Of a stretch of 64,000 bases of DNA, positions 4,201 through 57,820 are shown piece by piece. The notes under the pieces were generated by a model that saw only the letters and a program-made list of their open reading frames with translations, was not told the origin of the DNA and made no database searches. Position numbers and translations under genes: made by a program. The stretch lies in the IMG/VR virus record IMGVR_UViG_3300020202_000061, positions 124,001 through 188,000 of that record; one strand, written 5' to 3'. Within the stretch, counting starts at the first letter, position 1; the number at the start of each line of letters is the position of its first letter.

Positions 4201-4211
4201 AGTGCAACCCC

Positions 4212-4240
4212 TTGACATTCTCAAGGGTTTGCCTTAAATA
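4212..4240 (+). promoter_or_regulatory. Hybrid promoter TTGACA-N17-TAAATA for tmRNA
   Basis: Exact spacing; same design at 54045-54073 (tRNA cluster) and 5628-5656. Confidence 0.7.
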
Positions 4241-4246
4241 GGTCTT

Positions 4247-4515
4247 GTGACGTTGAAGCGTTGAAGAACGCTACTCTGGACCTGGGGGCGGTACCCAGCG
4301 GCTCCACCAAAATGCCCTCGGGCGCTATGGGGCCGAAACAGGATCGACAGGTAGTCAGTAGGCACGTGGAGTCATCCGGCGGAAGCTCGGTTAACGCAAC
4401 ACAAACAGTAATTGCCAACGATAACTTCGTTGCGGACGAGGGTTTCCGTATGGCCGCCTAAGGCGGTCCTCGGTAATCCAAATCCATCGCCCGGTGGGCG
4501 GGAAACAGAAACACC
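4247..4515 (+). ncRNA. ssrA: Circularly permuted two-piece tmRNA (alphaproteobacterial type); tag ANDNFVADEGFRMAA
   Basis: Acceptor piece first: T-arm CTGGG-GGCGGTA-CCCAG then CGGCTCC-A-CCA (ends 4309); 19-nt spacer; coding piece starts GGGGCCGAAACAGGATCGAC (4329). GGGGCCG/CGGCTCC gives the G3:U70 Ala determinant; tag 4414-4461; 3' GGAAACAGAA motif. Outer ends approximate. Confidence 0.93.
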
Positions 4516-4545
4516 AGAGAGCCGCCTTCGGGCGGCTCTCTTTTT
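4516..4545 (+). terminator. Intrinsic terminator of tmRNA
   Basis: AGAGAGCCGCC-TTCG-GGCGGCTCTCT followed by TTTT. Confidence 0.9.
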
Positions 4546-4561
4546 GTGTGGGATTACGGAA

Positions 4562-5145: not shown

Positions 5146-5301
5146 CAGTATGATGGTATTGGTTTTCTAATACCATCATACTGAATCTGATTGTTAGGGA
5201 ATCTCAAGTAGTATGTGAGTTTTTCTCACACAAGCATATCAGATATGCTTGTATTACATTGATATTTCTATTGTATTAGTCAATACAAGTATCTAAATAC
5301 T
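5146..5301. repeat. AT-rich cluster of inverted repeats
   Basis: CAGTATGATGGTATT/AATACCATCATACTG (15 bp perfect), TGTGAG/CTCACA, ACAAGCATATC/GATATGCTTGT, TTGTATT/AATACAA, AGTAT/ATACT. Confidence 0.8.
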
Positions 5302-5319
5302 CTCTGTGGAAAGCAAACC

Positions 5320-9284: not shown

Positions 9285-9317
9285 ATGAACAAGAACCTGC
9301 ACCGCACCTCCATATGA
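9285..9317 (+). CDS. Putative leader peptide MNKNLHRTSI (last codon ATA) upstream of tRNA-Ile(UAU)
   Basis: ATG 5 nt after TAAATA (same spacing as other apparent leaderless genes here); ATA-TGA overlaps a small terminator hairpin. Confidence 0.5.
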   Translation: MNKNLHRTSI

Positions 9318-9336
9318 CTCCCACTCAGGAGTTTTT
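9316..9336 (+). terminator. Small attenuator-like terminator immediately before tRNA-Ile
   Basis: (G)ACTCC-CACTCA-GGAGT(T) then TTT; weak stem. Confidence 0.45.
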
Positions 9337-9426
9337 GGGCGTGTGGTGTAATGGCAGCACAGCGGTCTTATAAGCCGTTCGTTCCGGACTGGAGCATAGA
9401 GACGGGTTCGATTCCCTCCACGCCTA
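9337..9426 (+). tRNA. tRNA-Ile(UAU) with long variable arm
   Basis: Acceptor GGGCGTG/CACGCCT, A73; anticodon loop CTTATAA; V-arm GTTCCG-GAC-TGGAGC; T-loop TTCGATT with bulged T-stem; CCA not encoded (CCG). Confidence 0.8.
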
Positions 9427-9430
9427 CCGA

Positions 9431-43719: not shown

Positions 43720-45321
43720 ATGGTAAAAGCTGTCGATATTCTTCGTCTGGTTCTGGAGAACTCCAAGGGGCGGGCTCACGCTCCGGGCGAGGTCAAGACC
43801 CCCAGCTACGACAACATCCACACCCCGGACAACCACAAGCGGAAATCCCGCGAGGTTCGGGCCAAGGGCCTGGGTGATCGTCCCGCACGGAAGAACGTCA
43901 AGCAGACCGAGAAGCCCAAGGGCATGGTCGATAACGGCGGCCCAGCCGCACCGGTCAAGATGAAGGAATCAGACGAGTACGCTTTGCGTGGTATGCCTGG
44001 AAGCACAAGAGAATTTTCTCATAATTTCAATCAAGGAAATTCAAATACTAAATTCTCAGGACCTTCCAAAATCACATACGAGCAGTGGAAGAACACGGTT
44101 AAGAAATTGTGGCCTGCTGCTCAGTTTCGCAAAGATTCCGTTCACGGCGATAGTTTCATTCATGAAGGTAAGCCTATTGCCAACTACAATAGTGGTGGTG
44201 TTTGGGTGAAAAAGCCCGGTTTCGTTGAGGCTCGGACCGCAGGCGCAAAGCGCCGCTACGGTCAGGGTAACAACGAGAATCAGGATGAGAACGCCATCGA
44301 CGATGGTAACGATGATCCGCGTGCGGTCCAGGAGACTCGGGGGAAGGTCGGGAAGCCCTCTACGAAGAAGCACAACCAGACCCAGGATCGGCCGAAGAAG
44401 CCTGCTGTGAAGGTCCAGGAAGGCGTCACCGATGCGGTGGCCGAGTTCCTCATGAAGATGTCCGGCCCCAAGGTGGGTCAGAAGCTCTACGCCGATCTCA
44501 AGACGGAGCGCCCTGATCTCTACCAGCAACTGGTGCAGACGTTCAAGCGCATGGCCGTGGGCACGGGTGGAGTCGGTGTGGTCCACGACGCCACGGCGTT
44601 CAAGAACATGATGAACGATCCCGAAGCGGTACAACTTGCCCGGCAACTGCGTCGGTGGGCAGCGGGTAAGCTCCGCAACAGTCCGGAGATTGTCGCTTGG
44701 CTCCAGCAGAAAGCTGAGAAGCTCAATGCCAAGGGTCTGAGCACGGTCGATCCATTGGGTGGTGACGACGAGGAAGAACTTAGGGATGCTGTGGGTAGCC
44801 CGAGTCAGTACCGTCCCGGCCTGGGTGAGAGCGCTCTGATGGGTCGTGAGACGATCCGTATTGTTTTGAAACTGCTCAATGCGGGTCTGATGAACGCGAT
44901 CTATGATCGGAAGCTCGGCATGGCTGCGCGTCAGATCATGAAGAACCCGAACGATCTCAGCCGGATCGAACCGGCCATGCAGATCATGCAGTTCGTCCGT
45001 AACAACGCCAAGACCCTGTCTCCGGAACTCCAGGCGGTTCTCAATCAGAACGTCATGCCCAAGGTTGCGGAGTCCAGCAAGACCTCCAAGAGCGCACCGG
45101 GCGAGATGCGGAAGCCTGCGGTCAAAACCGATGCCCCGGCCAAGTCCGCGAGCATGCGTTCGGGAAGTCTGACTCCGGAGAAGAAGGTTCCGGTTCGGGA
45201 CAAGAAGCCCGCCCTCAACAAGGATGCGGCCGAATTCGTCCGGGTCAGCGTGAAGAAGGTCGAGGAGGGCGTGAAGGCGCTCGCCGCAATGGGATTTCAG
45301 GTTCAAGGTTTGAAAAAGTAA
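43720..45321 (+). CDS. Late, charged low-complexity protein; putative prohead core/internal head protein
   Basis: TAAATA promoter; many hydrophobic-x-E sites (VLE, MKE, FVE, VQE x2, LGE, VAE, VEE). Confidence 0.55.
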   Translation: MVKAVDILRLVLENSKGRAHAPGEVKTPSYDNIHTPDNHKRKSREVRAKGLGDRPARKNVKQTEKPKGMVDNGGPAAPVKMKESDEYALRGMPGSTREFSHNFNQGNSNTKFSGPSKITYEQWKNTVKKLWPAAQFRKDSVHGDSFIHEGKPIANYNSGGVWVKKPGFVEARTAGAKRRYGQGNNENQDENAIDDGNDDPRAVQETRGKVGKPSTKKHNQTQDRPKKPAVKVQEGVTDAVAEFLMKMSGPKVGQKLYADLKTERPDLYQQLVQTFKRMAVGTGGVGVVHDATAFKNMMNDPEAVQLARQLRRWAAGKLRNSPEIVAWLQQKAEKLNAKGLSTVDPLGGDDEEELRDAVGSPSQYRPGLGESALMGRETIRIVLKLLNAGLMNAIYDRKLGMAARQIMKNPNDLSRIEPAMQIMQFVRNNAKTLSPELQAVLNQNVMPKVAESSKTSKSAPGEMRKPAVKTDAPAKSASMRSGSLTPEKKVPVRDKKPALNKDAAEFVRVSVKKVEEGVKALAAMGFQVQGLKK

Positions 45322-45373
45322 CGCTTGCCTCAGAACCAAATCCCCACCATATTTGGGGTTGGAAAGAAGAATA

Positions 45374-46960
45374 ATGGGGAATGCAGGTACTTTTGTCGGA
45401 GCCAAACTCACAGAGGATTGCGCAGATCGCCTGATTGAGTGGATGACCCAGCAGGGTATCCCGAATCCGACTCCCAAAGAGGAGCTTCACTGTACGGTCG
45501 TCTACTCGGAAGAGCGTGAGATCAAGATCACACCGCTCGCCTATGAGCCGCCGCTGGAGATCGATCCGCGATTGTTCAAGTTCAAGCACTTCGGCGAGAA
45601 CCGCGAAGTTCTGGTCCTGGCATTCGACCGGCCTGAACTCGCTTACCGACATAAGCTGCTTCGCGAGAAGTATAAGCTGGGCTGGAAGTTTCCCAGCTAC
45701 ATCCCGCACGTCACTCTGAGTTACAACGCTCCGGAGCACATCGAGGTGTTGCCGGATTTTCCGCTGGTGTTCCAGGGAGAAGAGGTTGGTGGGTTCAATC
45801 CACCGGAGGAGTCTGCTGCGGCCGAGCATCTGGAGAAGAACGAACTCAGTGAGTATTACGAGATCGTCAACGATGAGCCCGTGCGCAAGAAGAAGCGCCC
45901 AGAACCGCCGAAGAAGTTGATCGCGCAGAATCTCATAAAGTTGGGCCTGAAAGAGGATCGTCATCATGAGGACCATCCTCGTGTGCAGGAGCCGGGTCCA
46001 CAACAACTCTCGTATACGAGTTCGATGCGACAGAACGCTGTGGGACAGAAGTGTCAGGTCATCGTGCAGATGCCGGTGCAGGACTTCCTCCGTCTGACCA
46101 CGACGAATGACGCGGATATCGAGACGGTCTTCCGCAAGCAGGCTCATCCGCTGGATTCCTACAATCACTGGAACCGCATGGGCGATGAGCGTGAATACGC
46201 GTCCCAGGTCAATCAGGGCAAGACCTCACAGGATAAAGATTATCAGTGGGGACGGATCGTCGGTCCGTTCTTGCGCATCGACATTGAGCCGCCAGCGGGC
46301 ACCTTCGGTAAGGTCTCCGGCCACGAAGGTCGTCATCGAGCAGCAGCCGTGTGGAACGCCGGAGGTAAAGTGATCCCGGTCGCGTTGTGTCTGCGTCCCT
46401 TCAAGGGAATGTTCCCGAAGAGCTATGGACCCGAATACGAGGCACATCGGGAGCACATCCCGATGGCCGTGCACGGCCAGTTTCGTTCGATCAGTGTGAG
46501 CACGAGGAATTGGAAGGTGATCGAACCAGACCTGCTCAAGCCGTATCGTCGCACGAACGAATCAGTGCTGATGGAGGTCGCAGGCTCGTTCTCGTGGTTT
46601 CATCCTAAGACCGAGCAAGAGGTCACTGCGGAATTCGGAAAGAACGAACACTGGGACCTCGTCAAGGCGAATCCGACGAGGTTTGGCATGACTCGTGCGG
46701 AAGTGAATCAGCCTAATGCGCGGATCGATGATGTCTTCAAACATGGCTGGGTTCGAGTCAACTATTACAGAGGTGTCTGGTACTTTCATGGACAAACCGC
46801 TGCATTGGTGCAGGCCGCAGCCAAGCACTACGCGTGGGCACATGAAGGACTACACGAGGTGATTCTGGATATCGTCGAACCCAACTACAAGTCCTACACC
46901 CTGATGGGTCCGGCCATCGAAAAGTTTCTCAAGCACGGAGTGCTGCCGGAGTGGCGCTAA
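45374..46960 (+). CDS. acb1: Acb1/T4 gp57B-like 2H phosphodiesterase fused to a ParB/Srx-like domain and the repeated unknown domain
   Basis: GTFVGAK...IPNPTPKEELHCTVVYS...LVL.FD..EL..RH...YIPHVTLSY aligns by eye with T4 57B; GHEGRHRAAA ParB-like motif. Confidence 0.8.
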   Translation: MGNAGTFVGAKLTEDCADRLIEWMTQQGIPNPTPKEELHCTVVYSEEREIKITPLAYEPPLEIDPRLFKFKHFGENREVLVLAFDRPELAYRHKLLREKYKLGWKFPSYIPHVTLSYNAPEHIEVLPDFPLVFQGEEVGGFNPPEESAAAEHLEKNELSEYYEIVNDEPVRKKKRPEPPKKLIAQNLIKLGLKEDRHHEDHPRVQEPGPQQLSYTSSMRQNAVGQKCQVIVQMPVQDFLRLTTTNDADIETVFRKQAHPLDSYNHWNRMGDEREYASQVNQGKTSQDKDYQWGRIVGPFLRIDIEPPAGTFGKVSGHEGRHRAAAVWNAGGKVIPVALCLRPFKGMFPKSYGPEYEAHREHIPMAVHGQFRSISVSTRNWKVIEPDLLKPYRRTNESVLMEVAGSFSWFHPKTEQEVTAEFGKNEHWDLVKANPTRFGMTRAEVNQPNARIDDVFKHGWVRVNYYRGVWYFHGQTAALVQAAAKHYAWAHEGLHEVILDIVEPNYKSYTLMGPAIEKFLKHGVLPEWR

Positions 46961-52259: not shown

Positions 52260-52396
52260 TCCCGACATGTCGGGAATGGTGATGAACGCACGTAGTAATC
52301 GTGTCGGAGGCCCCTAGGGGTCCGCCCTGAATGCCCTCGGTTCATAGCCTTGGGACTAAACTGGGAGTCGGGGTTACGGCCGACACATCGCTACCA
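52260..52396 (+). ncRNA. Unidentified ~140-nt structured RNA
   Basis: TTGACG-N17-TATAAG promoter (52225-52253); stems TCCCGAC/GTCGGGA, TGGTGATG/CATCGCTA, GTGTCGG/CCGACAC, GCCCTGA/TCGGGGT. Confidence 0.55.
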
Positions 52397-52469
52397 AGTT
52401 ATCCACAAGAAATTCTAAAATCGGTCACAAATCCCTTGGCCTTTTTTAGCGAACCGCATATATAGGGAT

Positions 52470-53281
52470 CGGCAGCGTGATGCCGTCAGCACAACCGGGG
52501 TGACCCGGCCAAAGCGGAGAAGGTCCCCACCAACCCCGCGCCTCGCAAGAGGAGCACTCACGCGACAACCCAGGTCTGCCCCAAAAGGGTGCATCGTGAG
52601 AGCGGTGCGAAACAGGACAAGGTGAGGTAGTCAAGCGGCCCTCAAAAGGGGTCGTCAGGTAGAGGTCGCACTCTACCGCTTCCTGCGAAACACCACCTGT
52701 GAGGACTCAAGGGAAGGGGTCGGGTTGACCGTTAGCGCGGGAAGGCTCGATTCCAGTCTGATGGGAGAGGTTCGGCTGTTCAAGGCTCGCCAGAAATGGA
52801 GGGTCACGTAGCCGGGCTAAGCTTCCAGAAAGACCGTTAGTAGGCCCGCAAGGTCGAAAGCAAAGCACGGGTGTATTCTGGCCGGGCAACCGGTTGGATC
52901 ACAGTCAGTGGCTCGTGTTTGGTGGTTCCGGTAGGCAATGGCTTTTGAACGGCCAATCCTATTGATGGAAACGGAAAAGGAAAGACCGCTGACAGCGTGG
53001 GCTGAAAGAGGCCAACGTCCCTCAGGGACACCACCGGGACCCCAAGTCCAGGTGGCATCTAGGGAAAGGGTCTATCGGGATTTTCGCGAGTCCAGGTAGG
53101 TTCAGGAACTGGAGAAGATGCCTACGTTAAGCGCAAATGCCAGCGCTCTATAAATGGGCGGCCTTGCTTGGCTACCAACGAAAGTTGGTGGATGAGGTTC
53201 GAAACCCGGTGTGCTTACCCATCGGGGAATAATGGATCGAAGGCCGAGTATGCCTCACCTTAGTCTAGGGTGGGGCTTTTT
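52470..53281 (+). ncRNA. GOLLD-like giant structured RNA (~810 nt)
   Basis: Size, phage/tRNA context, purine-rich with many GNRA and CAAAAG-capped hairpins; TAGTAGGCCCGCAAGGTCGAAAG and CTACCAAC-GAAA-GTTGGTGGAT..GGGGAATAAT elements resemble GOLLD as I recall it; terminal hairpin plus U-tract. Confidence 0.6.
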
Positions 53282-53319
53282 CTTTTGCAGAACTCTGAAA
53301 ATTCTGATATATCCTGGGG

Positions 53320-54048
53320 ATGTCCGACGAGAATCCCTTCGAGCACCTATCTGACTCGGAATTGATGGACCGTCTTGGTGTGTCCTGGAATTCCGTGCTG
53401 AACCTGCGTGCGCAGATCAAGAAGGCCAAGGAAGCTCTTCCGGCCGCGTCCGAGGAATTGGAACAGCTTGAACGGGAGGCGAGCAAGCGCAAACGCCGCG
53501 ATGAATGGCTGGCGAAGCAGCCCGAGTTCGAACGAGCCCGTCAGGACCCGGAGTGGCAGGCGTGGCGCGTGGCATTCCTAGCGCGGGCTCGGGCGGCCGA
53601 AATCAACACACTGAACCTTCCAACGCCGGGTTTGAATTTCGTCCATGAGGACGTGTCTCTGACAGACCTCAACCTGTTCATGGCTCCGATCCATCCCGAG
53701 GAAGAGTTCGTTCGGTTCGACAATTCCTGGACCATGGCCCAGGTTGTGGTGCACGTCGGTCTATTCCAGAGCCTGACTCAGGCCAGAAAGAACGGTTTCA
53801 ACAAGCCGATTCCCAGTGGTTTCTCCCAGCATGTGATGGGGAAGAAGAAAACCACGGTGTTCATTCTGAACCGCTTACCCAAAGAGCCTAAGCCCACGCG
53901 TAGCATGTCTTGGGTCTACCAGGGTGTCAGCTATACCTACGGAAATGGCTTTTACACCTGCACCTATCCCGATGGTATTTGGTCGGTCTCGTTCAATGGA
54001 GTGCATTTCGTAAATGGAAAAGTTGTGCGTTCGAAAAGAAACTCTTGA
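53320..54048 (+). CDS. Hypothetical protein with possible S4-like RNA-binding motif
   Basis: Coiled-coil N-terminus; MAQVVVHVGLFQSLTQARKNG resembles the S4 motif. Confidence 0.55.
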   Translation: MSDENPFEHLSDSELMDRLGVSWNSVLNLRAQIKKAKEALPAASEELEQLEREASKRKRRDEWLAKQPEFERARQDPEWQAWRVAFLARARAAEINTLNLPTPGLNFVHEDVSLTDLNLFMAPIHPEEEFVRFDNSWTMAQVVVHVGLFQSLTQARKNGFNKPIPSGFSQHVMGKKKTTVFILNRLPKEPKPTRSMSWVYQGVSYTYGNGFYTCTYPDGIWSVSFNGVHFVNGKVVRSKRNS

Positions 54049-54094
54049 CACACCCTGGGGTTTCGACTAAATACGTCCTGATCGCGAGATCAAC

Positions 54095-54207
54095 CCGATC
54101 ATAAGTTAACAAGCCGAGGGTTCGCTGTCCCATGACGATGGGAATGCACCTTAGCTAGACGACCAGCTTTTAACTGGTTAGTATGGGTCCGAGTCCCATT
54201 GGTCGGT
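54095..54207 (+). tRNA. tRNA-Lys(UUU)-like RNA with a ~40-nt hairpin inserted in the D-loop
   Basis: Acceptor CCGATCA/TGGTCGG; ACCAG-CTTTTAA-CTGGT; T-arm ATGGG-TCCGAGT-CCCAT; no CCA. Confidence 0.6.
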
Positions 54208-54210
54208 TAC

Positions 54211-54287: not shown

Positions 54288-54364
54288 CCAGCGGTAGCTC
54301 AGAGACAGTAGAGCGCCGGAGTTAAATCTGGAGGTCGGGGGTTCAATTCCTTCCCGCTGGGCCA
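54288..54364 (+). tRNA. Atypical tRNA with 6-nt anticodon loop (GTTAAA); possibly Asn-derived
   Basis: CCAGCGG/CCGCTGG, G73, CCA; stem CCGGA/TCTGG closes only 6 nt. Confidence 0.65.
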
Positions 54365-54385
54365 TTTTGTAGAGGAAACACGACT

Positions 54386-54424
54386 ATGTTGTTGCGTGAA
54401 GAGGAATCGATGAAGGCTGTGTAA
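54386..54424 (+). CDS. Leader peptide MLLREEESMKAV (GAA-GAG-GAA) of the tRNA-Glu operon
   Basis: AGAGGA RBS 9 nt upstream; 3' end overlaps the antiterminator strand. Confidence 0.7.
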   Translation: MLLREEESMKAV

Positions 54425-54482
54425 TGTGACCAACATTGTTGGTGCACACGCAGCCGCCTGGAGAAATCCCGGCGGCTTTTTT
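54415..54482 (+). promoter_or_regulatory. Transcription attenuator: antiterminator 54415-54455 versus terminator 54452-54482
   Basis: GGCTGTGT pairs with ACGCAGCC around the GTG-ACCAAC/GTTGGT-G-CAC hairpin; terminator AGCCGCC-TGGA-GAAA-TCCC-GGCGGCT-TTTTT shares AGCC. Confidence 0.75.
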
Positions 54483-54490
54483 GTTGCTCT

Positions 54491-54567
54491 GTCCCTGTCG
54501 TCTAGCGGTCAAGGATGCCACCCTCTCAAGGTGGAGATCACGGGTTCGAATCCCGTCAGGGACGCCA
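54491..54567 (+). tRNA. tRNA-Glu(CUC)
   Basis: GTCCCTG/CAGGGAC, CCACC-CTCTCAA-GGTGG, TTCGAAT, CCA. Confidence 0.95.
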
Positions 54568-54581
54568 AGAATACGAACGAT

Positions 54582-54657
54582 GGCTCGTTCATCTAGTGGC
54601 CTAGGATACCGGACTTTCACTCCGGGTACACGGGTTCGACTCCCGTACGAGCTACCA
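54582..54657 (+). tRNA. tRNA-Glu(UUC)
   Basis: GGCTCGT/ACGAGCT, CCGGA-CTTTCAC-TCCGG, TTCGACT, CCA. Confidence 0.92.
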
Positions 54658-54659
54658 GA

Positions 54660-54734
54660 CGCCCATTCGTCTACTGCCTAGGACACTGGCCTTTCAAGCC
54701 AGGGGAAGGGGATGGATACCCCTATGGGCGACCA
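54660..54734 (+). tRNA. tRNA-Glu(UUC) with non-canonical T-loop
   Basis: CGCCCAT/ATGGGCG, CTGGC-CTTTCAA-GCCAG, T-loop ATGGATA, CCA. Confidence 0.85.
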
Positions 54735-54760
54735 GTTTCAGTTCCCGAACGGTAGTAGGG

Positions 54761-54837
54761 TGCTGGGGTGAAGCGGGGTTCGAGTCCCCAAGCGGATCGG
54801 TTCGACTCCGACTCGCGCAGGTGCAATATCCCCAGCG
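54761..54837 (+). ncRNA. tRNA-like element with two T-loop hairpins
   Basis: GCTGGGG/CCCCAGC closing stem; GGGG-TTCGAGT-CCCC and TCGG-TTCGACT-CCGA. Confidence 0.5.
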
Positions 54838-54841
54838 TTTT

Positions 54842-54922
54842 CCCCCGTGGGATTGCGGTTGGTGTGATCGCCGGTTTCTCAAATCGGAGCACAGATGGGT
54901 TCGACGCCCATACGGGGGACCA
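54842..54922 (+). tRNA. tRNA-Glu(CUC), divergent
   Basis: CCCCCGT/ACGGGGG, D-stem GATT/GATC, CCGGT-TTCTCAA-ATCGG, ATGGG-TTCGACG-CCCAT, CCA. Confidence 0.8.
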
Positions 54923-56608: not shown

Positions 56609-57820
56609 ATGGCGAAGTTTGAAGTGCCCGTGGTTCGCGTTCGTGCGGTCGAGAAGCATCCGAACGCTGATCGACTCGATATCGTCCGTATCGGCGACTA
56701 CAACTGCATCAGCAACAAGAAAGAGGACGGCACGTCCAGGTATGCGCCGGGCGATCTCGTCGTCTACGTCCCGGAGGGTGCCATCGTTCCAGAGTGGTTG
56801 CTCCGCATGGGCTTCTGGAATGAAAAGACCAACATGGGTCTGCTCGCCGGACCTCAGGGCAATCGCGTGAAGGCGGTGACCCTGCGTGGGGTCATCAGCC
56901 AGGGCATTATGTTTCCGGTCAGCACTGGTGACGTGCAGGGCTTTCCCCTGGGTGATCCCAACATGAACGCGCCCTGGATCAGCGTTGAAGAGGGTCAGAA
57001 CCTCGCGACCGATCTCAACATCATCAAGTATGAGCCGGAGATTCCCGATTGCCTCAAAGGTTCGGTTGCGTCCTGCCACGGATGGACTCTCAAGGGCGAT
57101 CTGGAGAACGTCAAGAAGTTCCCCGACATCCTCCAAGAGGGTGAGGAAGTCGTGATGACCGAGAAGGTTCACGGCGTCTACATGCAGATCGGTTATGTAC
57201 CGAATTTGGAGTTCGAGATCGATGCCGACGAGAGCAATGGGCTCTACAAGGATGGCGATTGGTTCGTCACGTCCAAGGGTCTGGCCGAGGTCGGCATGGT
57301 ATTTCAGTTGAACGAGGAGAACGCTGAGAACCTCTACGTGAAGATGTTTCGCAAGATGAAGGAACGTCTGGAGTGGCTCTACAACGACATGTACGAGAAG
57401 TGGCAACAGACTCAGGATCGTTACTACCCGGAGAATCGCCCGTTCTACCTGATCGGTGAACTTTACGGGCCGGGCGTCCAGGACCTCCACTACAGTTTCC
57501 AGCAGGAGTTCGTCGCCCACGACATCTACATGGGTCAGCCCGGCAACGGTTGGTATCTGGATGAGGATCAGTTCGCCTATCATACCGAAAGGGCTCACAT
57601 CGACCGTGCGCCGGTCCTCTATAAGGGTCCGTTCTCGAAGGGGGTGATGCTCCAGCACACGAGTGGGCCAAGCGTCTTGGCTCTCGGAAAGCACATTCGT
57701 GAGGGACTGGTGGTGAAGCCCATGCAGAACCGCCGAGACGACCGGATCGGTCGCGTCATGCTGAAATCGGTCAGCGACGAATACTTGCTCCGTAAGGGAG
57801 ACGCTACGGAGTACGCATGA
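56609..57820 (+). CDS. RNA ligase, DRB0094/Rnl2-like family with N-terminal OB domain
   Basis: HPNADRL, YVPEG, LRG.ISQG, motif I EKVHG, GELYGPGVQ, REGLVVK, LKSVSDEYL. Confidence 0.9.
   Translation: MAKFEVPVVRVRAVEKHPNADRLDIVRIGDYNCISNKKEDGTSRYAPGDLVVYVPEGAIVPEWLLRMGFWNEKTNMGLLAGPQGNRVKAVTLRGVISQGIMFPVSTGDVQGFPLGDPNMNAPWISVEEGQNLATDLNIIKYEPEIPDCLKGSVASCHGWTLKGDLENVKKFPDILQEGEEVVMTEKVHGVYMQIGYVPNLEFEIDADESNGLYKDGDWFVTSKGLAEVGMVFQLNEENAENLYVKMFRKMKERLEWLYNDMYEKWQQTQDRYYPENRPFYLIGELYGPGVQDLHYSFQQEFVAHDIYMGQPGNGWYLDEDQFAYHTERAHIDRAPVLYKGPFSKGVMLQHTSGPSVLALGKHIREGLVVKPMQNRRDDRIGRVMLKSVSDEYLLRKGDATEYA

Follow-up and report, generated by a model that had tools for sequence, protein, structure and literature searches.

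A candidate Glu-sensing leader preceding tRNA-Glu genes in a giant phage

Introduction

Why should a phage place a strong intrinsic terminator directly in front of its own tRNA genes? Inside the tRNA gene cluster of a giant phage, a spacer of 126 nt carries a ribosome site, a 12-codon reading frame with three glutamate codons, and two competing hairpins, one of which is a terminator. It sits just before four glutamate tRNA genes and is almost unchanged in three related phages. It may thus be the first leader-peptide switch known to control tRNA genes, but this is unproven. A first-pass annotation, made from the sequence alone, had interpreted the locus as a Glu-codon-sensing transcription attenuator by which the phage makes replacement tRNA-Glu only when functional Glu-tRNA is depleted, for example by a host anticodon nuclease or a GluRS-targeting toxin. 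We examined the locus by sequence comparison, RNA folding and database searches.

The window, i.e. the whole stretch of DNA analysed (64,000 nt), is part of IMGVR_UViG_3300020202_000061, a 347.5-kb viral contig. It also contains a permuted alpha-type tmRNA, a tRNA-Ile, a GOLLD-like RNA, a protein with an anti-CBASS Acb1 domain, and an RNA ligase with a PHA02142 OB domain. Further downstream in the syntenic relatives are an HNH nuclease, an N6/N4 methyltransferase and a DNA ligase. No cultured phage is close, as a blastn search with 4 kb returned only generic tRNA matches.

Results

Anatomy of the locus

All features listed in the first-pass annotation are present at the positions it gave, so that its observation is confirmed. 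The features of the locus are as follows.

54045–54073 (+): promoter-like element for the tRNA array, TTGACA (54045–54050), a 17-nt spacer, and TAAATA (54068–54073); it overlaps the stop codon of the 242-aa gene; function inferred.
54288–54364 (+): odd tRNA with a 6-nt anticodon loop, directly upstream of the spacer; called tRNA-??? by ARAGORN, Rfam tRNA 45 bits.
54371–54376 (+): Shine-Dalgarno-like AGAGGA; GAGG ends 10 nt before the ATG.
54386–54424 (+): 12-codon leader ORF MLLREEESMKAV, ATG at 54386, TAA at 54422–54424, with an in-frame internal ATG at 54410.
54398–54406 (+): GAA-GAG-GAA, three consecutive Glu codons; the same run is a GAGG ribosome-site core 5 nt upstream of ATG 54410.
54415–54455 (+): hairpin A, the candidate antiterminator; in the outer stem GGCTGTGT (54415–54422, the last ORF codons) pairs with the complementary ACGCAGCC (54448–54455), with an inner stem-loop at 54426–54447.
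54452–54483 (+): intrinsic terminator; stem AGCCGCC (54452–54458) / GGCGGCT (54471–54477) with an inner GGA/UCC stem, followed by T6 at 54477–54482; it shares 54452–54455 with hairpin A.
54491–54567 (+): tRNA-Glu (CUC), the first gene behind the terminator; Rfam 63.9 bits.
54582–54657 (+): tRNA-Glu (UUC); Rfam 58 bits.
54660–54734 (+): tRNA-Glu (UUC) with a non-canonical T loop (AUGGAUA); Rfam 45.7 bits.
54842–54922 (+): 81-nt tRNA-Glu (CUC)-like gene.

The tRNAs were called by ARAGORN, which also finds a tRNA-Arg (UCU) upstream of the odd tRNA. Rfam's tRNA model confirms all but the last tRNA-Glu, which is an ARAGORN-only call without an Rfam hit. That gene is nevertheless conserved, with a compensatory change in its T stem (see below).

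To check whether such an arrangement is expected by chance, we performed a mechanical census of both strands of the window. Among 66 mini-ORFs of 6–30 codons with a ribosome site and ATG, six contain a run of at least three identical residues and two are followed by a strong terminator. Only this one has both. In addition, the spacer folds better than its shuffles (z = −2.8; 0 of 200 as good).

Conservation in related phages

Protein searches with the two flanking genes, followed by inspection of the gene context, gave three syntenic phage contigs: L006 (JGI, 409 kb), L010 (Logan, 16.6 kb) and L012 (ENA, 38 kb). All three carry the spacer between the odd tRNA and tRNA-Glu (CUC). Identities to the window are:

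Spacer: 95–96%
Odd tRNA: 99%
tRNA-Glu (CUC): 96–100%
242-aa gene: 70–82%
117-aa gene: 84–86%
tRNA-Arg: 49–58% (replaced by other tRNA-Arg (UCU) genes)
14-nt linker after the first tRNA-Glu: 57–100%
Intergenic stretch after the last tRNA: 44–65%

Diverged, unconstrained sequence therefore lies within a few hundred bases of the spacer, which argues for selection rather than mere recency. The array is visibly mosaic, however, and some contribution of recent exchange to the high identity of the block cannot be excluded. The only change in the odd tRNA is in the loop (GUUAAA versus GUCAAA), and the first tRNA-Glu (CUC) shows a compensatory C-G to U-A change in the anticodon stem. In L010 and L012, the T stem AUGGG/CCCAU of the last tRNA-Glu becomes ACGGG/CCCGU. 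In L006 only two Glu tRNAs follow the spacer: a different tRNA-Glu (UUC) occupies the second position, and the third and fourth genes are absent. Within the conserved block of odd tRNA, spacer and tRNA-Glu (CUC), extended by a tRNA-Glu (UUC), the odd tRNA is the 5' member.

Further relatives were sought without success. IMG/VR and the JGI metagenome collection contain only the source contig, and the terminator 26-mer is absent from GTDB genomes. Homologues of the 117-aa and 203-aa neighbours at 61% identity or less lie in loci without tRNA arrays (four loci, L002, L007, L017 and L018). A fifth clade member (sample SRR22388024; loci L011 and L016) is broken at the array. A covariance model found only the four orthologues, and no paralogue, in the window and 17 retrieved loci (184 kb of sequence). 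A pattern of Glu-codon run, T run and tRNA-Glu 5' end matched only the source contig in IMG/VR and nothing in GTDB (one genome from each of 185,579 species). Five other IMG/VR tRNA-Glu genes with a T6 run just upstream have no such leader.

These data make a chance arrangement, i.e. an ordinary terminator ending the upstream tRNA unit next to an accidental mini-ORF, very unlikely. Short ORFs with a ribosome site are frequent in this window, and many patterns were looked at in the first-pass annotation. However, the 88 nt between the odd tRNA and the terminator are 95–100% conserved while true linkers in the same array diverge to 44–65%. Moreover, other RNA genes of this phage (the tmRNA, tRNA-Ile and the GOLLD-like RNA) have canonical terminators of the same type immediately after the gene.

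No known RNA family reaches threshold in the spacer. A search of the whole window at Rfam gathering scores gave nothing in the spacer, and a lax search of 54355–54500 (146 nt, E up to 10) gave only noise at 16 bits or less, with no match to T-box or amino-acid leader families. A tRNA remnant is rejected as well, as neither ARAGORN nor the Rfam tRNA model identifies a cloverleaf inside 54365–54490.

Two competing hairpins

The naked spacer folds to −42.7 kcal/mol. Hairpin A (−21.5 kcal/mol) forms in the minimum-energy fold of the naked spacer and of every prefix from 54455 onward, i.e. as soon as it is transcribed. It persists when the polymerase would be at the U tract, leaving a truncated terminator stem 3 nt away from the U run. 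The full terminator (−18.3 kcal/mol) overlaps hairpin A by only 4 nt. Forcing it costs less than 2 kcal/mol (−36.7 against a free minimum of −38.5 kcal/mol), so that the two states are balanced.

Folding with part of the leader blocked by a ribosome had been proposed in advance as a check of the attenuator model, and we carried it out with a 30-nt footprint. A ribosome at the stop codon gives the full terminator, whereas with the A site on the first or second Glu codon hairpin A forms together with the truncated terminator; the third Glu codon is borderline. The geometry thus behaves as predicted. A candidate anti-antiterminator (1:2) pause hairpin, pairing ACACG (54378–54382) with UGUGU, appears in some folds but is weak (−7.5 kcal/mol) and is not kept across relatives, which leaves open whether the element has such a hairpin. 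The small 5' hairpin of the minimum-energy fold is likewise not conserved.

In the relatives the terminator is identical. Hairpin A changes at five or six positions, yet its stability stays between −21.3 and −22.3 kcal/mol: in the inner stem an A-to-C change is matched by an inserted G and an A-to-U change re-pairs with the formerly bulged G, and in the outer stem a U.G pair becomes U-A. Covarying stems had also been named beforehand as a criterion. Because of the indel, column-wise counting registers no pair that changes on both sides, and with four sequences the covariation statistics are empty. We therefore treat the structure as consistent with the data, not proven.

The conserved, terminated spacer could alternatively be chiefly a stable small RNA cut out of the tRNA precursor. 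In this view, RNase P cleavage at tRNA-Glu and 3' processing of the odd tRNA would define its ends, the terminator hairpin would protect its 3' end, and it would act in trans as a sponge or regulator. The spacer does lie in a tRNA precursor and carries a terminator-type 3' hairpin, and it is conserved as strongly as the tRNAs around it. The hairpin with its U tail and the purine-rich single-stranded 5' half resemble Hfq-type sRNA architecture. A second conserved non-tRNA spacer (54735–54841) lies in the same array, so the array carries other structured RNAs. As precedent, the 3' external transcribed spacer of glyW-cysT-leuZ acts as an sRNA sponge, and the T4 tRNA cluster encodes the stable species 1 and 2 RNAs. 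However, this reading does not explain how tRNA-Glu genes 8 nt behind an apparently strong terminator are expressed; no target or seed was identified, and no Rfam sRNA family matches. Accumulation of the RNA, target pairing and Hfq binding were not examined, as there were no expression data and no host genome. We consider this role unlikely as the main function, although it is compatible with an attenuator acting in cis.

Is the leader ORF translated?

The ribosome site is of the kind this phage uses. Of 32 first-ATG starts of long ORFs, 18 have a GAGG, GGAG or AGGA core, against a background of 16%, and several of the largest genes have the same 10–11 nt spacing (for example TAGAGGG-N10-ATG). 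The AGAGGA and the Glu run are invariant in the four phages and the ORF is intact in all of them. The only variable sites are in codon 3, which reads TTG, CTG or CTA, all Leu. The chance that two random substitutions are both synonymous is about 0.04, which is a weak signal for coding; there is no direct evidence of translation.

Other observations point to constraint on the RNA sequence itself. In the three flanking genes, 171 of 375 codons with a conserved degenerate amino acid (0.456) are identical in all four phages, while in the mini-ORF 9 of 10 are identical (P about 0.005). The six codons outside the conserved stems (2 and 4–8) are all frozen (P about 0.009). Something beyond a peptide or its codons therefore constrains the 5' half. 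The signature expected of a leader peptide, with ORF and regulatory codons kept while other synonymous sites drift and stems covary, is thus neither established nor ruled out by only four sequences at 95–96% identity. Further, GAAGAGGAA is also a ribosome site with ideal 5-nt spacing for the in-frame ATG at 54410. A ribosome starting there would translate only MKAV and could still open hairpin A without ever reading a Glu codon.

The frozen 5' half is as expected for a binding site rather than a peptide. The hairpins may form an RNA switch or a fixed-ratio (leaky) terminator that does not depend on translation, with an incidental ORF. One version would set a constant ratio between the promoter-proximal RNAs (tRNA-like element, tRNA-Arg, odd tRNA) and the distal Glu tRNAs. 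The other would be a temporal gate opened by a phage or host factor, e.g. a protein binding the conserved purine-rich 5' half, a tRNA, or a processive antitermination system. The near-equal energies on naked RNA fit this view, as do two copies of AGAGGAA in the 5' half, a GGA in the terminator loop, and the canonical terminators used elsewhere by the phage. Gating of downstream genes by terminators is classical phage practice (lambda N/Q, HK022 put). However, no known RNA family matches and no candidate factor was identified. Three features would then be coincidences: the stop codon lying exactly in the 5' arm of hairpin A, the phage-typical ribosome site, and the three codons cognate to every downstream tRNA. 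We regard this alternative as doubtful, though only slightly less probable than leader-peptide attenuation.

Transcription context

TTGACA and TAAATA are invariant in the four phages while the 17 nt between them vary. This is the signature of a promoter, although a consensus scan did not call it because its −10 rule is not met. The same scan missed the terminator because of the internal mismatch. An independent promoter between the terminator and the tRNAs had been named as an observation that would refute the attenuator; no consensus match was found inside or after the terminator, and with only 8 nt between the U tract and tRNA-Glu there is no room for one. We saw no terminator between the last tRNA and the 117-aa gene, and read-through probably continues into the protein genes, a step which is inferred.

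Discussion

The element is real, conserved, and built like a terminator/antiterminator switch whose toggle point coincides with the end of a plausibly translated mini-ORF. Ribosome-mediated attenuation tuned to Glu decoding is the most economical mechanism and the best single reading, but we hold it only tentatively. In this model, transcription starts at the promoter-like site about 310 nt upstream and runs through a tRNA-like element, tRNA-Arg and the odd tRNA into the leader. On RNA free of ribosomes, or with a ribosome held on the Glu codons, hairpin A would form first and take the four basal nucleotides of the terminator stem, and polymerase would read on into the tRNA-Glu genes and probably the protein genes behind them. 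A ribosome translating the ORF to its stop would melt the 5' arm of hairpin A, so that the full terminator forms and transcription ends 5–9 nt before tRNA-Glu. Output of tRNA-Glu would therefore rise when decodable Glu-tRNA, or translation in general, is short.

The interpretation in the first-pass annotation is thus partly supported. Our analysis demonstrates the sequence features, the two competing structures with near-equal energies, the strong conservation, the phage-typical ribosome site and the lack of room for a promoter, whereas translation of the ORF, stalling at Glu codons, regulated read-through and any role against host defence are inferences; the response of read-through to charged tRNA-Glu was not assayed. 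The annotation's statement that no leader-peptide attenuator of tRNA genes has been described agrees with the papers we searched, which describe none.

The counter-defence scenario is a reasonable hypothesis which nothing here tests. Glu makes up 4.7% of codons in the long ORFs of the window, so that four divergent tRNA-Glu genes are not explained by rare-codon supply, and an RNA ligase and an Acb1-domain gene lie nearby. In its boldest form, which we consider unlikely but not excluded, the leader measures decodable Glu-tRNA and switches on the phage tRNA-Glu genes, and by read-through downstream genes including the RNA ligase, only when host tRNA-Glu or Glu charging is knocked out, for example by an anticodon nuclease or a GluRS-targeting toxin. 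This would be the first leader-peptide attenuator known to control tRNA genes, and an inducible phage counter-defence circuit.

Leader-peptide attenuation has been a textbook mechanism for half a century, known for amino-acid biosynthesis and a few synthetase operons, not for tRNA genes and not inside a tRNA precursor. If the element works as its anatomy suggests, it would show that a phage regulates its own tRNA supply by sensing the very decoding step those tRNAs perform. It would also give a direct experimental handle on the long-debated question of whether phage tRNAs serve codon supply or replacement of tRNAs destroyed by host defence. Even under the rival readings it is a strongly conserved terminator/antiterminator module or small RNA of unknown function, in a jumbo-phage tRNA island that also carries a GOLLD-like RNA and several non-canonical tRNA-like genes.

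Among known systems, phage tRNA arrays can act in counter-defence and rescue translation from tRNA-targeting defences, as with T5 tRNAs against PARIS and retron effectors and anticodon-loop variants that evade nucleases (PMC10264068, PMC11464382, PMC11555353). Here, too, several divergent isoacceptors for one amino acid sit next to an RNA ligase gene and, 7.4 kb upstream, an Acb1-domain protein. Those tRNAs are not known to be controlled by an attenuator, and no nuclease targeting tRNA-Glu is identified here.

T-box riboswitches are likewise cis-acting terminator/antiterminator switches tied to the status of a particular tRNA, and the Glu codons could in principle pair with tRNA-Glu anticodons. 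However, the spacer of 126 nt is too short and has no Stem I, specifier loop or T-box sequence. T-boxes control synthetase, biosynthesis and transport genes, not tRNA genes.

Spacer-derived RNAs of tRNA operons (the 3'ETS of glyW-cysT-leuZ; stable RNAs C and D of the T4 tRNA cluster) are also conserved non-tRNA RNAs embedded in a tRNA transcription unit and ending in a terminator hairpin. Those elements lie at the end of the operon or have no genes that depend on read-through, while here four tRNA genes and further genes follow within 8 nt.

With the ribosome-mediated transcription attenuators trpL, hisL, pheL, and pheM ahead of pheST, the element shares a short ORF with a ribosome site, a cluster of regulatory codons, an antiterminator whose 5' arm is covered by a ribosome at the stop codon, and an intrinsic terminator just before the regulated genes. 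It has no sequence homology to any Rfam leader family and no convincing 1:2 pause hairpin, only three regulatory codons, and an overlap of only 4 nt between antiterminator and terminator. The regulated genes are tRNA genes in a phage instead of biosynthetic or synthetase genes, and the leader sits inside a tRNA precursor, 21 nt after another tRNA.

Unusual tRNAs and tRNA-like elements

The tRNA array contains the following atypical members:
54148-54210, tRNA-like element
54288-54364, tRNA with a 6-nt anticodon loop
54660-54734, third tRNA-Glu
54735-54841, second conserved spacer
54842-54922, fourth tRNA-Glu

The tRNA with the 6-nt anticodon loop could not be assigned by ARAGORN. It is 99% conserved in the three related phage contigs L006 (positions 5242-5318), L010 (2833-2909) and L012 (5623-5699). 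The single difference is located in the loop, which reads GUUAAA in the window and GUCAAA in all three relatives. It could be a decoy, a suppressor-like tRNA or a Leu-like tRNA. The tRNA-like element matches the Rfam tRNA model with only 21 bits (E = 0.38) and was not called by ARAGORN. Its anticodon-like loop reads CUUUUAA in the window and CUUUGAA in L006 and L012, while L010 has a different element at this place, with the loop AGUUAAA.

The third tRNA-Glu has a non-canonical T loop (AUGGAUA). The fourth is 81 nt long with an unusual D region and is missed by Rfam. Together with the other two, this makes four mutually divergent Glu isoacceptors. The second conserved spacer is 96-97% identical in L010 and L012 but absent in L006. 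It folds into a cloverleaf-like shape with two T-arm-like hairpins (GGGGUUCGAGUCCCC and CGGUUCGACUCCG), although no tool calls it a tRNA.

A further short ORF was found at 9286-9336, upstream of tRNA-Ile(UAU) at 9337-9428. It has 10 codons (MNKNLHRTSI), the last sense codon being AUA, which is cognate to the tRNA that follows. Its stop codon overlaps a weak hairpin (ACUCC/GGAGU) followed by U5, which abuts the 5' end of the tRNA. This ORF has no ribosome site, and the arrangement may be a second, weaker instance of the same logic as that proposed for the tRNA-Glu leader, or a coincidence.

Neighbouring genes and structured RNAs

Four further features of the window were identified:
4208-4552 (+), permuted tmRNA
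45314-46957 (+), 548-aa ORF with an Acb1 domain
52862-53271 (+), GOLLD-like RNA
56609-57820 (+), RNA ligase

The 548-aa ORF carries an N-terminal anti-CBASS Acb1 domain (PF23474, E = 2.8e-22). The RNA ligase (PF09414) has a PHA02142 OB domain and is followed in the relatives by an HNH nuclease, an N6/N4 methyltransferase and a DNA ligase. All are on the same strand as the tRNA array, with no obvious terminator in between. The tmRNA is of the two-piece, alpha type, with the tag ANDNFVADEGFRMAA and a strong terminator, which hints at an alphaproteobacterial host.

The GOLLD-like RNA lies within a non-coding stretch of about 52270-53320. It matches Rfam RF02032 over the full model length with 76.7 bits (E = 2e-19), which is, however, below the gathering score of 150. 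Its own terminator is located at 53252-53276. GOLLD RNAs are known to sit near phage tRNA islands.
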